Sequence record: MH383160.1
Direction: 5' to 3' (one strand)
DNA: 64,000 bases
The notes beneath the pieces are model-generated. The model was not told the origin of the DNA. It saw nothing but the letters and a program-made list of their open reading frames with translations, and ran no database searches. Positions 4,053 to 53,596 of the stretch are shown here, in pieces. Made by a program: the position numbers and the translations under genes. The number at the start of each line of letters is the position of its first letter. Within the stretch, counting starts at the first letter, position 1.

Positions 4053-4646
4053 TTAATATTTTAAAACATCAAACTCTTCGCTTACGNNNNNNNNNNNNNN
4101 NNNNNNNNNNNNNNNNNNNNNNNNNNNNNNNNNNNNNNNNNNNNNNNNNNNNNNNNNNNNNNNNNNNNNNNNNNNNNNNNNNNNNNNNNNNNNNNNNNNN
4201 NNNNNNNNNNNNNNNNNNNNNNNNNNNNNNNNNNNNNNNNNNNNNNNNNNNNNNNNNNNNNNNNNNNNGATTGTATGATTGTGGAGAATGATAAATTGTC
4301 CACCACCTACATCTTGTGATGCATCTCGTGCACCCCATTCTTCTTTAAACATTTGACGAATAATTGGAATAACTTTAAGAACCAAATATTGTGAAAATGT
4401 TTGACTAGCATCTTGTTCAGGTAAATTAAGGTTATAATTTAACAACTGACCCATACGAAATGATGTAGTATAACCCAATGCCATTACTTCTTTAGTTCTA
4501 GTTAGTCCATCATCATGTAACTTGATAAATTCTTTCTCGAATACCTTTGGCTCAGTTTGAACAGTTTTTGTAAATCCATTGCTTCCTAACTTATCCCCAG
4601 CAATAAAAGAACTTACTCCGTCAGTGTGTGCAATAATACAGGTCAT
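4053..4646 (-). CDS. HslV/proteasome-beta-like Ntn peptidase (interrupted by an N gap)
   Basis: likely start MTCIIA..GD exposes an N-terminal Thr; ATGA overlap with the upstream gene supports this start. Confidence 0.65.
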   Translation of the reverse strand: MTCIIAHTDGVSSFIAGDKLGSNGFTKTVQTEPKVFEKEFIKLHDDGLTRTKEVMALGYTTSFRMGQLLNYNLNLPEQDASQTFSQYLVLKVIPIIRQMFKEEWGARDASQDVGGGQFIILHNHTIXXXXXXXXXXXXXXXXXXXXXXXXXXXXXXXXXXXXXXXXXXXXXXXXXXXXXXXXXXXXXVSEEFDVLKY

Positions 4647-6186: not shown

Positions 6187-6473
6187 CAAAAAAGGAGCCA
6201 TACNNNNNNNNNNNNNNNNNNNNNNNNNNNNNNNNNNNNNNNNNNNNNNNNNNNNNNNNNNNNNNNNNNNNNNNNNNNNNNNNNTCCAAATCTACTTGTT
6301 ACCCTTTTCTCACTACGGTGTATACAGTTTACAATATAGTACTTATTATTTTGTGCAGAAAAACGAACTTCATAATTTCGAAAAGAAGTATTAGGTTCAT
6401 CCATAGCAACTATATATAACATAAAAATAAAAAACACTGTTATTAGAAAAGCAATAATAATTATTACTGTCAT
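6183..6473 (-). CDS. membrane-anchored hypothetical protein (gap)
   Basis: N-terminal TM helix; N run inside. Confidence 0.55.
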   Translation of the reverse strand: MTVIIIIAFLITVFFIFMLYIVAMDEPNTSFRNYEVRFSAQNNKYYIVNCIHRSEKRVTSRFGXXXXXXXXXXXXXXXXXXXXXXXXXXXVWLLFC

Positions 6474-6961
6474 TTATCAAGACCCTTATCATAAATGCAA
6501 TTAACAATAATTNNNNNNNNNNNNNNNNNNNNNNNNNNNNNNNNNNNNNNNNNNNNNNNNNNNNNNNNNNNNNNNNNNNNNNNNNNNNNNNNNNNNNNNN
6601 NNNNNNNNNNNNNNNNNNNNNNNNNNNNNNNNNNNNNNNNNNNNNNNNNNNNNNNNNNNNNNNNNNNNNNNNNNNNNNNNNNNNNNNNNNNNNNNNNNNN
6701 NNNNNNNNNAATATTACTCCACTCATGATGTTCATGCTTTGCTTCATCACTAACCCAGTCTTGAAAACGTCCATCATTGACTAAGTGTTGATTCACATCA
6801 CAACAATTTGGTTGTTTTGATGGAGTACCATTGTATCCAGTACTCAATACTCGATTATTTTTGACAATAACACAACCAACTTTTTGTGAAATACATTTAC
6901 TTTCCTCAGCAACTACTTCTGCTATCTTCAACCAAGTCGTATGTTTCATTATAAGCTCCAA
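6470..6961 (-). CDS. cd: dCMP deaminase (gap over the catalytic HAE region)
   Basis: SKCISQKVGCVIVK...STGYNGTP...CCD. Confidence 0.88.
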   Translation of the reverse strand: MELIMKHTTWLKIAEVVAEESKCISQKVGCVIVKNNRVLSTGYNGTPSKQPNCCDVNQHLVNDGRFQDWVSDEAKHEHHEWSNIXXXXXXXXXXXXXXXXXXXXXXXXXXXXXXXXXXXXXXXXXXXXXXXXXXXXXXXXXXXXXXXXXXIIVNCIYDKGLDK

Positions 6962-7430: not shown

Positions 7431-7956
7431 TATGTCCCTCTAGATTCCAATCATCAACGAGTTTAGAACAAACTTCCATATGATTATAGTACTTTTCATC
7501 CAATACATACGGTTTATTATGATNNNNNNNNNNNNNNNNNNNNNNNNNNNNATTTCTATATATGAATGACATATTTTTATGCATTAATTCTATAGTTTTC
7601 CAAATTTTCTCAATATCATATAGAATTGTTTCTAATGACAAACCTGTTAACTTGGAAATTCTTTCAACTTTAAACCCTGATAACATCATAGTACTATTGT
7701 GTTTAGTTAAGTAACTATATCCAATAGAACTATGTATTAACTCAATACTATCAGTATATGTGATTGTTTTTAGAAATGATTTTATATTTCTATTTAACCA
7801 ATACCACTTTTTGTTTTTATTATAACATCTATACCATTTCTTCAATATATCAATTGCTTCAGAATTAATTTTTAAANNNNNNNNNNNNNNNNNNNNNNNA
7901 TGATGGTAAAAAATATCACTTTGTTCTTCAGTTAAATTATATTGCTGCATATTCAC
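7402..7956 (-). CDS. hypothetical protein (gaps)
   Basis: 184 aa ORF, probable paralog of 6906-7430. Confidence 0.65.
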   Translation of the reverse strand: MNMQQYNLTEEQSDIFYHHXXXXXXXXLKINSEAIDILKKWYRCYNKNKKWYWLNRNIKSFLKTITYTDSIELIHSSIGYSYLTKHNSTMMLSGFKVERISKLTGLSLETILYDIEKIWKTIELMHKNMSFIYRNXXXXXXXXXXHNKPYVLDEKYYNHMEVCSKLVDDWNLEGHNEIHTPKYR

Positions 7957-8074: not shown

Positions 8075-8521
8075 TTATTTTTGATATGGGGTGTACTGAT
8101 ATTTTTCACAATCAGCGACAGTTAGAACACCTTCATCATAACCATATTGAAGTACAAGGNNNNNNNNNNNNNNNNNNNNNNNAACAACATCTTTATAACG
8201 AACAATCTTATGAGATTGATTCTCAACTGCTTTCATAATCCCCATTAGCAACCAGCGACCTTCATCGGTGTGTAATTTAGCAAAGCGTGGACGCTTTGTC
8301 GCTGCCATAATATCAGTCCATTCAGCTTTAAAAATGTGTGGACGTTTTGGAATATCATATAGTGTAGTAGGAAAAGTTACATTATTTTTCTTCATTGCTT
8401 CTGCTTGTGCTGCACGATAGCCCTGACGATATAATGGATGCTGCATTTTTAGCTGTTCAGCACTTAGAACTACTTTTGCTTTGTATGCGTCATAACCATC
8501 TTTATATTGTGCATTGGACAT
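8075..8521 (-). CDS. hypothetical protein
   Basis: 148 aa ORF. Confidence 0.7.
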   Translation of the reverse strand: MSNAQYKDGYDAYKAKVVLSAEQLKMQHPLYRQGYRAAQAEAMKKNNVTFPTTLYDIPKRPHIFKAEWTDIMAATKRPRFAKLHTDEGRWLLMGIMKAVENQSHKIVRYKDVVXXXXXXXXLVLQYGYDEGVLTVADCEKYQYTPYQK

Positions 8522-8522
8522 A

Positions 8523-8840
8523 TTATTCTTTTACCTCATCAGTTTGAATGTATTTTTTGTCAGAGAATGTACCGTGTTCTTTACGCACAGCTTCTGCATG
8601 TTGAACCGCATCAACNNNNNNNNNNNNNNNNNNNNNTAGTACTTCCTTCATTAATTCAAGTACAATTGCAAAACCATTCAGCACACGCTCAGATTCATCT
8701 ACATTTTTTAATTCAAGTGCTACTGCACTAATTTGATCGAACGCAACATTAATAAAATCGGAATCTTCTAATACATTTGCTACTTCCGTATTATTACGTA
8801 CTAGTACTTTCATATAATCTCCACAAAGATGATGCCCCAT
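8523..8840 (-). CDS. hypothetical protein
   Basis: ORF in operon context; true start may be the internal MKV. Confidence 0.65.
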   Translation of the reverse strand: MGHHLCGDYMKVLVRNNTEVANVLEDSDFINVAFDQISAVALELKNVDESERVLNGFAIVLELMKEVLXXXXXXXVDAVQHAEAVRKEHGTFSDKKYIQTDEVKE

Positions 8841-29679: not shown

Positions 29680-30225
29680 TTATAGACAGTTCTGTACTAT
29701 CTTATCAAAAGTACTACTGTCAATGTTATATTCATACAAAAATTTAAAATGTGAACCATAACGCATCATCAGATTAAACTCTTCTTCAGTATTAAATTTG
29801 TAATCATGAAGAGTTTCAGGGGTACATGTTAAACCTAAAAACTCAATTATTTCAGATGTTACATCATTTCCTGAATTGAAGTATTTAACCCAAACACATT
29901 TTCCTTGTGGGTTGTATTTTCTATATTCTCCTTCTAGTTCTCCTTTTATAATATGAGCCTTAACACTTATTAAATTATTACTATATCTTTCCTCGAAATA
30001 ATTACCATACTGTGCTTTTAATATTGTTGGTTTTTGTGTAGGAAGTAATTTGACTGAAGTAACTTCAATGCCGTTCTGTAATTCCTTTATGTACGAAATG
30101 CATCCTTTTTCTTTAATAACAACAAATCCTGTAAAGTTATCTTCATCTTGTAATTGGTTTTCACAATCAACAAAATCCAAAGTCTTATAGGTAAAAGTTT
30201 TTTGTTTTCTAATAAATGCCATCAT
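29680..30225 (-). CDS. MORN-like repeat protein with degenerate FQ-type module
   Basis: GELEGEYRKYNPQG; TEEEFNLMMRY; start reassigned to MMAF after an AGGA RBS. Confidence 0.65.
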   Translation of the reverse strand: MMAFIRKQKTFTYKTLDFVDCENQLQDEDNFTGFVVIKEKGCISYIKELQNGIEVTSVKLLPTQKPTILKAQYGNYFEERYSNNLISVKAHIIKGELEGEYRKYNPQGKCVWVKYFNSGNDVTSEIIEFLGLTCTPETLHDYKFNTEEEFNLMMRYGSHFKFLYEYNIDSSTFDKIVQNCL

Positions 30226-30329
30226 TATTCCTATGGAAACATCAATGAATATACGTGACGTTGATTTCATCAACATCAGTAGAATTACCATGCTACGCAT
30301 GTCTAATTCTACAAGTACTATTTTCTTTT

Positions 30330-30871
30330 AATTAATATTGACGGGGTTTGCTTGAGCATATTTCATCCCCCCGCAGGGGAAAGAACAAAAAAGTTTGACG
30401 CTGGTGGCCTTCACATAGTTCATATCACGAATTCTCTTACGAGACGAAAGCGGGTTGCTCTGTTTCTCTCTATCGCGGTTCTTGTAGCAACGGTCGTCGG
30501 TCTTAAACATCCCGACACATAATACAAATACCATATGACCAGTACTTGTATTTGATTTCACAAAATTTGGACGCAACTATATTGTATAATTCCGACCGCA
30601 TATTTCTTATGAAATCTCCCTTAGATAATTGGTAAGGTGCGATCCTTATATGTCTATCGAGGAACTCTCTTTATCCTATTGGAGTTCTTTATACAGCCGC
30701 ATTGCCGTGAGTGGTTCAAACTATGCCATCATCTAACGGGTTTCATCTGCTGTTCGTACTGAAAGGACTACTCATCTACCCTCTACATTTTCGAGTGGAT
30801 TAGGCTTTTAATCATTTCCTCATAGGAACCTTTCAGGATTAAAAAAAAGGTGACAACAACATCTGCTGTCA
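30330..30871 (-). ncRNA. candidate large structured non-coding RNA (~500 nt), boundaries approximate
   Basis: 41% GC over 30361-30840; many local and long-range helices; promoter directly upstream; no credible CDS. Confidence 0.65.
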
Positions 30872-30875
30872 CCTT
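30841..30875 (-). terminator. Rho-independent terminator
   Basis: AAGGTGACA/TGTCACCTT stem plus T run. Confidence 0.8.
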
Positions 30876-30877
30876 AC

Positions 30878-30905
30878 ATTATATCATTAACTTATTCTTT
30901 GTCTC
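30878..30905 (-). promoter_or_regulatory. extended -10 promoter for the candidate ncRNA
   Basis: GAGACA-N16-TATAAT with TG extension. Confidence 0.65.
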
Positions 30906-31758
30906 AGTTATATTCTGTTTTTTCAGTAAAATTTGTCAGTATATCAACGCTTACGCATCTAATAATTTCAATCTTACTTGGCATTAAACGGTGTTTATTT
31001 TTAACGTACAATTCATCATCTTCAATAAAAGACGTAAAAATGAATGCCATATCTTCACGTGGAATTTGTAAAATATCACACATTTCATTTGCCGATGCTA
31101 CTGGTGAATCATTGTAATACTTAGAGTATGCATTGGATTGGCGACCGATTATAATAGAATTTCTGATTAGAAAATTACTACAGTACTGAAAATCTTTGTA
31201 GTACTTTTCAATAATGTACGGCATAAGTGCTTCTTTCACGTCTTCATACCCATTAGTACTATCAATTGCTATACAGTAATCTTCACGTTCTTTTTTCTCA
31301 TGATGGTAATCATAAACATACTCAAAGAATGAATTTTTATTTAATGAATCATTTAAACCAACTGATCCACTATAGTATGATTTTCTATCATTCAATCGAT
31401 CATCTGGGCATGATGCATACATAGAAGTGTCATGTGATGATGTACCAATATAAATTTTCTTAGTAATATGATTATATGCTATGTAATCATAATCTTGAAC
31501 TCCAGTTAGCATTAACTGGAACATTAAATCATCAGGAACATCAATTAACGGGTACTCAAACTTCGAATATCTACTGCGGCAGAAGTTCTTTTCAAATGCT
31601 CGGTATGTGATAAAATCTTTTAGATTTTTACAAGATTCATGTTCATGAGCACTACTGATACGTACATTGACATTAGTCGATGTGCAATATCCATCCGAAT
31701 CTTCGGTGAAGTTACCAGCATAATCCTTATTGTAGTCAACGATTAGATAAAGTTTCAT
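30904..31758 (-). CDS. hypothetical protein with internal FQ-type module
   Basis: 284 aa; PDDLMFQLML. Confidence 0.8.
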   Translation of the reverse strand: MKLYLIVDYNKDYAGNFTEDSDGYCTSTNVNVRISSAHEHESCKNLKDFITYRAFEKNFCRSRYSKFEYPLIDVPDDLMFQLMLTGVQDYDYIAYNHITKKIYIGTSSHDTSMYASCPDDRLNDRKSYYSGSVGLNDSLNKNSFFEYVYDYHHEKKEREDYCIAIDSTNGYEDVKEALMPYIIEKYYKDFQYCSNFLIRNSIIIGRQSNAYSKYYNDSPVASANEMCDILQIPREDMAFIFTSFIEDDELYVKNKHRLMPSKIEIIRCVSVDILTNFTEKTEYN

Positions 31759-53468: not shown

Positions 53469-53596
53469 GCGGGGGCGGGGTATTTTTTGTTTCAGGAAAC
53501 ATGAACTGTACTCTGAAAAACACAATANNNNNNNNNNNNNNNNNNNNNNNNNNNNNNNNNNNNNNNNNNNNNNNNNNNNNNNACCCCCCTGCGGCC
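53469..53596. repeat. G-rich/C-rich imperfect inverted repeat flanking an N gap
   Basis: GCGGGGGCGGGGT at 53469 and ACCCCCCTGCGGCC at 53583. Confidence 0.45.

Follow-up and report, generated by a model that had tools for sequence, protein, structure and literature searches.

A new family of large structured RNA in the intergenic DNA of Rak2-like jumbo phages

We found that a stretch of intergenic DNA in a jumbo phage (positions 30333-30871, minus strand, of a 64,000-nucleotide window of sequence record MH383160.1) is a gene for an intricately folded non-coding RNA of roughly 500 bases, belonging to a family that is absent from Rfam 15 and for which we found no description in the literature. 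All Rak2-like jumbo phages searched (Asteriusvirus, Mimasvirus, Eneladusvirus, RaK2 and relatives) keep four or five diverged, same-strand copies per genome, and a few integrative islands of enterobacteria carry a single one. Its function is not yet known and is only inferred below. The analysis started from an original prediction made from the sequence alone, which described an intergenic region of raised G+C content with eight complementary segment pairs and an extended -10 promoter, and which read it as a new or divergent large structured RNA of about 500 nt with its own promoter. The observation is confirmed here, except that two of the eight helices are not kept in relatives, and the interpretation is supported by the comparative evidence, although neither a ribozyme nature, which was also raised, nor any functional link to the downstream hypothetical, methyltransferase and cytidylyltransferase genes has been shown. 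That the element is one of four or five paralogues per genome could not be seen from the single sequence.

The 801 bases around the element were 100% identical to Escherichia phage UB and 96% identical to phages 121Q and PBECO4, which are Asteriusvirus, Rak2-like jumbo myoviruses of about 350 kb. The element lies between two minus-strand ORFs, 30904..31758 (121Q gp415) and 29680..30300 (gp416), and is followed downstream by a DNA methyltransferase and a cytidylyltransferase. In 200-nt windows across 30300-30900 the G+C content was 0.38-0.43, against 0.27-0.35 in the flanking genes. The only sizeable ORF was an 82-aa frame with a TTG start (30328..30576, minus strand). Translation of this frame had been named beforehand as an outcome that would overturn the RNA reading; we examined its conservation and found it interrupted in 68 of 70 homologues, with a median of 19 codons open in the best frame, equal variability at the three codon positions (0.258/0.261/0.238) and indels that were not multiples of three. 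The possibility that the stretch is not an RNA gene, but either this ORF or a dispersed DNA repeat such as a protein-binding or packaging site, is thus most improbable, since the substitutions described below are compensatory in antiparallel Watson-Crick/GU fashion on one strand, with G-U pairs tolerated, which duplex DNA sites do not require.

To ascertain how widely the element is distributed, we carried out blastn searches, which disclosed the central 480 nt or so (window ~30812-30332) at 66-75% identity in mostly unannotated DNA of 62 phage records, with 4-5 places per record. These were phages of Escherichia, Salmonella (Munch, 7t3), Klebsiella (fENko-Kae01), Erwinia, Serratia (BF), Yersinia (fHe-Yen9-03/04), Xanthomonas (XbC2/XaC1), Cronobacter (GAP32) and Pectobacterium (CBB), and the database annotations under the element read "none", "hypothetical protein" or "terminator". 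Phage 121Q has four copies, all on one strand, at 90.3, 192.8, 247.5 and 326.6 kb, while the other genera have five. The copy orthologous to that of the window, which we call type A, keeps its synteny across genera (a 285-aa hypothetical gene, the RNA, a 175-aa hypothetical gene, Dam methylase and cytidylyltransferase). In contrast, the other copies have unrelated neighbours, including a sigma factor, a structural protein, and endonuclease VII with the baseplate hub, the last pair being on the opposite strand. An exact pattern from the most conserved core was then scanned against three collections. It matched 56 loci in IMG/VR, all on contigs of 345-378 kb (including one of 345,809 bp) or on shorter contigs taken to be fragments of such phages, 71 loci in metagenomes, and five loci in 185,579 species genomes, of which four are real and one (Sedimenticola) is a chance match. 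A profile HMM found the window copy and 185 other full-length copies in the loci retrieved, and extracted 110 distinct full-length copies of 440-607 nt; no covariance model was built, as these loci had already been found by profile HMM and pattern. The family is defined by a core of about 480 nt containing GACCGU...GAAAC...AACCCGC (domain 5), CACGGCAAUGCGGC, GAUAGAC and UAAGGGAG, with helices P1-P14, and the window copy, which serves as the reference sequence, fits this definition. A tree showed orthologous groups across genera, as expected of ancient paralogues.

The copies were aligned by sequence only (MAFFT), which, if anything, understates pairing. When all column pairs were ranked by APC-corrected mutual information, an unbiased scan, the top pairs were almost all Watson-Crick and fell into antiparallel runs, and from these we built a model of 19 covarying helices comprising P1-P14, four pseudoknots (PKa, PKb, PKc and P11) and the bracket P1b, with four or five of the helices counted as pseudoknots; a twentieth helix, P15, is conserved but showed no covariation. 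The features are summarized in Table 1, where position p in UB numbering corresponds to window 30844-p. A lack of covariation among homologues had been set out in advance as grounds for rejecting the prediction, but the opposite was observed: on 71 non-redundant copies (below 93% identity), the 99 proposed pairs were 91.3% canonical and 86 showed compensatory changes on both sides, against shuffle means of 70.2% and 68.8, and 0 of 500 shuffles reached the observed values. Per helix, canonical pairing was 62-100%, against 3-65% when the partner column was slid by one or two positions, with PKa at +2 (95%) as the one exception. For domain 5, the covariation score was 0.624 against 0.213 for shuffles, and RNAalifold independently found 15 of 16 pairs compensatory. 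About 90 positions were invariant or nearly so, mostly in junction strands, including CACGGCAAUGCGGC, GAUAGAC, UAAGGGAG, CGACCGUUG and GAAAC..CAACCCGC.

Table 1. Coordinates of the element in the window (all minus strand); helices that were also in the original prediction are marked with the coordinates given there.
Feature	Position	Components	Observations
-35-like promoter element	30900..30907	CTGAGACA; GAGACA 16-18 nt upstream of the -10	Corresponds to the GGGACA / TGAAAC / TGGAAC box found 16-17 nt upstream of the -10 in the other copies
Extended -10 promoter	30878..30886	TGATATAAT (TGnTATAAT)	Inferred transcription start about 30871 (not mapped); same relative position in all type-A orthologues
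5' stem-loop and U-run	30841..30875	13-bp hairpin (30875-30847), U-run to 30841	Looks like the intrinsic terminator of the upstream gene and would be the 5' hairpin of the RNA; terminators annotated at this place in Munch and GAP32
Domain 1	30756..30840	P1 (30836-30829 with 30766-30759; predicted as 30829-36/30759-66) enclosing hairpins P2 (30828-30816) and P3 (30798-30779, conserved GAAAAUGUA loop); P1b, GAG-NN / NN-CGA (30771-30769 with 30758-30756), bracketing the 3' strand of P1	P1 85% canonical, 8/8 pairs compensatory; P3 91%; P1b 100%, 2/3 compensatory
Domain 2	30693..30753	P4 (30753-30749 with 30697-30693) enclosing P5/P5a (30739-30705) and the near-invariant CACGGCAAUGCGGC strand	P4 100% canonical, 4/5 pairs compensatory; P5 99.6%
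Domain 3	30623..30702	Hairpins P6 (30687-30662; predicted as 30662-67/30682-87) and P7 (30648-30633); pseudoknot PKa, AUG/CAU (30702-30700 with 30652-30650); pseudoknot PKb, P6 loop with the strand after P7 (30676-30674 with 30625-30623); invariant GAUAGAC and UAAGGGAG strands	P6 90% canonical, 6/6 compensatory; PKa 98.6%; PKb 84%
Variable domain	30496..30616	P8 (30616-30610 with 30560-30554) enclosing the module with the conserved UACAAUAUA...CGUCCAAA (30603-30564); long hairpin P9 (30552-30521; predicted as 30542-52/30521-31); hairpin P10 (30516-30496; predicted as 30512-16/30496-500)	P8 82% canonical; P9 93%, 12/12 compensatory; P10 99%
Domain 5 (most conserved core)	30419..30491	Pseudoknot P11 (30491-30487 with 30458-30454; predicted as 30486-90/30455-59); P12 (30477-30473 with 30430-30426); P13 (30470-30446); P14, GUAA hairpin (30444-30433; predicted as 30433-44); PKc, P9 loop (30539-30533) with 30425-30419	99.4% of 1445 cells paired, 18/21 pairs compensatory, reached by 0/500 shuffles, slid controls 39-51%; PKc 96% canonical, 7/7 compensatory
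3' module	30333..30404	Direct repeat 1, CCAGCGUCAAA (30404-30394); U-run (30392-30387); C-run/G-run hairpin P15 (30381-30367); invariant GGAUGAAA; direct repeat 2, CCCCGUCAAU (30346-30337)	Terminator hairpin inserted at the U-run in other paralogues; the repeats change together as identical letters (UU/CC, GG/AA); conserved sequence ends at about 30333, true 3' end not known

All eight complementary segment pairs originally listed exist in the sequence, and six of them correspond to P1, P6, P9, P10, P11 and P14 of the model. In contrast, 30718-25/30414-21 (42% canonical) and 30706-10/30425-29 (49%) were at the level of slid controls and are rejected, the second also clashing with the well-supported P5 and P12. 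The evidence that the structure exceeds chance is comparative and not thermodynamic, since the minimum-free-energy fold of the 540-nt RNA (-136.4 kcal/mol) was not better than shuffles (z = -1.3, 10 of 100 as good), and the sequence alone does not prove structure. A local GACGA/UCGUC hairpin at repeat 1, considered on inspecting the alignment by eye, was inconsistent among copies. That the two CGUCAR repeats vary as identical letters rather than complementary ones is left unexplained.

With regard to transcription signals, 59 of 71 copies had a TGnTAnnnT within 95 nt upstream, and the rest had TCCTATAAT or TCCTATACT. The -35-like box resembles the TGAAACG -35 of the "divergent RpoD-like" promoters described for CBB and GAP32 (PMC5259590). 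In every type-A orthologue, across genera, the order was -10, hairpin plus U-run and then RNA core, so that the hairpin is both the terminator of the upstream gene and, if the promoter fires, the 5' stem-loop of the RNA; it could, however, terminate much of the transcription. Several paralogues and island copies have an intrinsic terminator just after the first CGUCAR repeat, and yet the segment that follows (P15 and repeat 2) is conserved even where the RNA should already have ended, which we cannot explain. Contigs from four RNA-labelled runs of two studies covered 30292-30850, with sparse or more diverged flanks, but these runs were chosen because they contain this stretch, carried-over DNA cannot be excluded, and contigs give no transcript ends, levels or timing. 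Expression is therefore plausible but not shown, and the discrete transcript whose absence would have spoken against the original prediction was not measured.

These arrangements also bear on whether the element is a giant cis-acting leader or attenuator of the downstream hypothetical/Dam methylase/cytidylyltransferase operon. The window copy has no clear terminator before the next gene, 30-110 nt downstream, and some paralogues carry the terminator hairpin inside the element. However, a riboswitch or leader should always lie 5' of a same-strand gene of a consistent functional class, and this was not so: downstream genes differ at every paralogue, the 121Q copy at 326.6 kb lies between minus-strand genes, opposite to it, and island copies converge on a repressor gene. 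We consider this explanation very unlikely.

Full-length homologues (nhmmer E 1e-88 to 1e-121) were found once each in Serratia fonticola and Serratia sp. 2723, Silvania hatchlandensis, an Enterobacteriaceae MAG and 2 of 5,426 complete E. coli genomes, whereas there was no match in 72,556 plasmids or in 400 other genomes sampled from the order of S. fonticola. All sit in integrated islands, either next to a large serine recombinase or converging on a CI-like S24 repressor, with host flanks that differ from case to case, and the island cargo includes Hachiman (HamA plus a helicase), AbiGi, an nSTAND3 NTPase, ParB-like genes, small resolvases and integrases. In the tree, the bacterial copies fell in three separate places among the phage copies, which implies repeated exchange. 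The islands share a CI/Cro-like pair and a resolvase with each other, but no protein was shared between the island neighbourhoods and the window, the whole 121Q genome or the phage collection, except for one unlinked DUF4326 homologue. The RNA is thus the only common part, and presumably needs no dedicated co-encoded protein.

Comparison with known RNAs was another test proposed with the prediction. A covariance-model search of Rfam 15 (including GOLLD, ROOL, OLE, HEARO, group I/II introns, RNase P, tmRNA and 6S) gave no match at gathering scores in the whole window, only three scattered chance hits at E<=10, and no recurrent hit in 15 homologous loci. ARAGORN detected no tRNA or tmRNA gene in the window. 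As to group I introns, all copies are intergenic with unrelated neighbours, with no exon context and with promoters of their own; the pseudoknots could not be mapped onto P3-P9, and self-splicing was not assayed. The element nevertheless shares with self-folding ribozymes of T4-like phages and bacteria (group I introns, RNase P RNA) a similar size range, GNRA loops, a pseudoknotted core and invariant junction nucleotides. A new large ribozyme, in which the pseudoknotted core with invariant junction nucleotides would form an active site that processes itself or a host or phage RNA, with the two CGUCAR repeats as substrate or junction sites, is a rival. In its favour are the invariant positions concentrated in junctions, the multiple pseudoknots, the GNRA-type loops of P2 and P14 and the absence of a shared protein partner in both phages and islands. 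Against it, no ribozyme family matched, no internal guide of 7 nt or more complementary to the repeats sits at a conserved place, several copies per genome suggest dosage rather than turnover, and there is no biochemical evidence of catalysis, so that we regard it as unlikely.

A second rival is a self-assembling "ornate" particle like ROOL or GOLLD, in which the paralogues would oligomerise, among themselves or with each other, into a large RNA-only complex during infection. ROOL and GOLLD, which form homo-oligomeric cages (bioRxiv 10.1101/2024.12.08.627333), are likewise several hundred nucleotides long, intergenic in phage genomes, rich in helices, pseudoknots and conserved junctions, of unknown function and without a dedicated protein partner encoded next to them. 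P1 (8 bp) and the two-base-pair bracket P1b both covary, yet they cannot easily coexist within one molecule because P1b closes directly around the 3' strand of P1, a conflict that the model leaves unexplained and that strand exchange between molecules would resolve; moreover, conserved apical loops such as GAAAAUGUA and CAUAGUUUGUA have no intramolecular partner. However, this clash is only an indirect hint, oligomerisation was not assayed, there was no detectable sequence or structure similarity to either RNA, and the P1 sequences are paralogue-specific, which makes hetero-oligomers formed through P1 unlikely. The element also differs from ROOL and GOLLD in its hosts (Enterobacterales and Xanthomonas jumbo myoviruses rather than Firmicutes or rumen phages), in its 4-5 diverged paralogues per genome, each with its own promoter, and in the lack of nearby tRNA genes. 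This reading is also unlikely, somewhat more so than the ribozyme.

The regular spacing of the copies (about 52-84 kb apart) hints at a DNA-level role that our preferred explanation does not account for. The loci could be replication origins, where a promoter-driven structured pre-primer RNA, as in ColE1 RNA II or T4 origin transcripts, would form a hybrid near the G-run and iteron-like repeats and prime DNA synthesis, and islands would carry one copy so as to be replicated by an infecting jumbo phage. In Serratia phage BF, the five copies lie at 30, 93, 175, 259 and 335 kb of 357 kb, and the smallest gap on a circle is 52 kb, for which (1-5d/L)^4 gives P of about 0.005 for random points. Like those primers, the element combines a dedicated promoter, a structured RNA of about 0.5 kb and a C-run/G6-run with direct repeats in its 3' part; T4 also has several origins per genome, and the islands showed no replication genes of their own in the parts inspected. 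However, cumulative GC skew and gene orientation in 121Q passed through all four copies without any inflection, initiation itself not being measured. In addition, a 480-nt core with this much covariation and this many invariant loops far exceeds what known primer RNAs need, the conserved terminators would stop the RNA before the G-run, and the repeat motif does not form iteron arrays, so that an origin primer is doubtful.

What the analysis demonstrates is a conserved, non-coding, heavily covarying element of about 0.5 kb with promoter-like and terminator-like signals, present in several ancient paralogues, whereas its abundance, free-standing state, action in trans and the roles of copy number and divergence are inferences. 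We believe that the most plausible explanation, held as a whole with moderate confidence, is a free-standing RNA of about 540 nt with its 5' hairpin, made in large amounts by the host RNA polymerase from its strong TG-extended -10 promoter and folding on its own. It would act in trans and stoichiometrically with host components rather than with a dedicated co-encoded protein, because phages and islands share no neighbouring protein, and it may, for example, bind, sequester or re-programme a host factor through its invariant core and its repeated AUCnCGUCA motifs. In this view, several copies would supply dosage, and their 25-35% sequence divergence, compensated inside helices, would prevent lethal recombination between direct repeats, since a recombination-proficient, T4-related phage would otherwise delete the 50-110 kb between them. 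We are highly confident that this is a real structured RNA of a new family and consider it likely to be free-standing and trans-acting, but host-factor binding is only tentative: no binding partner has been identified, and the conserved junctions and pseudoknots fit a catalytic or self-assembling RNA at least as well as a sponge. It is also conceivable, although unlikely, that the element represents a new class of RNA machine, either a ribozyme or a multi-subunit particle built from the paralogues, shared by jumbo phages and enterobacterial defence or satellite-like islands as a weapon or target in their conflict, the island copy mimicking or intercepting, for example, the partner of the phage RNA.

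Large ornate phage RNAs of unknown function are already known as a kind, and what is new here is the family. Literature searches found no description of it, no passage on non-coding or intergenic elements was found with the terms used in the Rak2 and Sharanji papers, the word "intergenic" does not occur in the CBB paper and none of its passages that we examined mentions such an element. A 2023 catalogue of viral structured-RNA candidates (PMC10690425) lists only motifs of 29-151 nt and could at most contain fragments, which was not checked. Pseudomonas jumbo phage PA5oct, a distant relative of the Rak2-like group, has long intergenic RNAs of 236-619 nt (ncRNA001-004) found by RNA-seq, two of which account for up to 5% of phage reads (PMC7318152). 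Using nhmmer, we found no similarity between the family and ncRNA001 or ncRNA002, which lie in the 17-kb stretch searched, whereas ncRNA003 and ncRNA004 lie outside it and were not compared; homology is not supported.

Large, highly structured bacterial and phage RNAs of unknown function are rare (OLE, GOLLD, ROOL, HEARO and raiA are the known examples), and each has opened new biology. The present one is tractable, as it sits in cultivable E. coli, Salmonella, Klebsiella, Serratia and Erwinia jumbo phages that grow on laboratory strains, offers more than 100 distinct natural sequences for structure work and comes in 4-5 anciently diverged paralogues that act as a natural mutagenesis series. 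Its occurrence on mobile islands next to defence genes makes a role in phage-host or phage-island conflict directly testable. The element also fills about 2.5 kb of "empty" intergenic DNA in every genome of this clade.

The copies of the RNA are all on one strand of the phage genomes (Serratia phage BF, GAP32, CBB and 121Q) and regularly spaced, lying about 52-84 kb apart in the five-copy genomes. For five random points on a 357-kb circle, a smallest gap of at least 52 kb has P about 0.005, although, since synteny is shared between genomes, this counts as one observation and not as ten. While the other genera have five copies, Asteriusvirus has four. In Xanthomonas phage XaC1, four of the five copies (loci L046, L053, L060 and L064) cluster together in the tree instead of with their positional orthologues, which suggests gene conversion or recent duplication in that lineage.

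Positions of the RNA copies in phage genomes and of other features
Feature	Position
Copies in phage BF	30.3, 93.1, 174.5, 258.8 and 335.4 kb
Copies in phage GAP32	35, 99, 178, 262 and 341 kb
Copies in phage CBB	32, 94, 174, 258 and 336 kb
Copies in phage 121Q	90, 193, 248 and 327 kb
Promoter (-35-like box plus TGnTATAAT)	window 30907-30878
Hairpin module of about 40 nt	window 30603-30564
Direct repeats (YCAnCGUCAR)	window 30404-30394 and 30346-30337
Further conserved motifs	30-90 nt downstream of the element in many copies
Runs of N	window 4087-4268, 6204-6284, 6513-6709, 7524-7551, 7877-7899, 8160-8182, 8616-8636 and 53528-53582

Single copies of the RNA were found in small integrative islands of Serratia fonticola (L135), Silvania (L216), Serratia sp. 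2723 (L217), an Enterobacteriaceae MAG (L218) and E. coli LR-29-1 (L219), the last in an island beside ffs. These islands carry large serine recombinases, CI/Cro-like switches and defence genes (HamA plus a helicase, AbiGi and nSTAND3), and could be satellites or defence islands that interact with jumbo phages.

Upstream of all copies, the RNA promoters share a -35-like TGAAAC/TGGAAC/GGGACA box plus TGnTATAAT, and this matches the "divergent RpoD-like" promoter class reported for CBB and GAP32. Phage 121Q has 101 TGnTATAAT sites, 85 of them on the plus strand. The runs of N in the window amount to 610 bases in all and were left untouched, and none of them is near the RNA element. Downstream of the element, in many copies (for example those at loci L020, L025, L030 and L062), further conserved motifs follow the RNA, namely AGTRTTAAAC, TGAATTGAG and GTACGAACG, which may be a promoter or leader for the next genes, or another small RNA element.

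The two direct repeats, present at the same places in all copies, change together as identical letters across lineages (UU/CC and GG/AA), and no conserved internal complement to them exists. In 121Q the motif is concentrated in the RNA copies, which account for 6 of 14 genome-wide matches to one form and 2 of 8 to the other. A portable hairpin module, with conserved UACAAUAUA and a CGUCC bulge, occurs once or twice per RNA, the second instance lying inside P14 of other paralogues (for example those at L004, L030 and L219), and its CGUCC resembles the 3' direct repeats.
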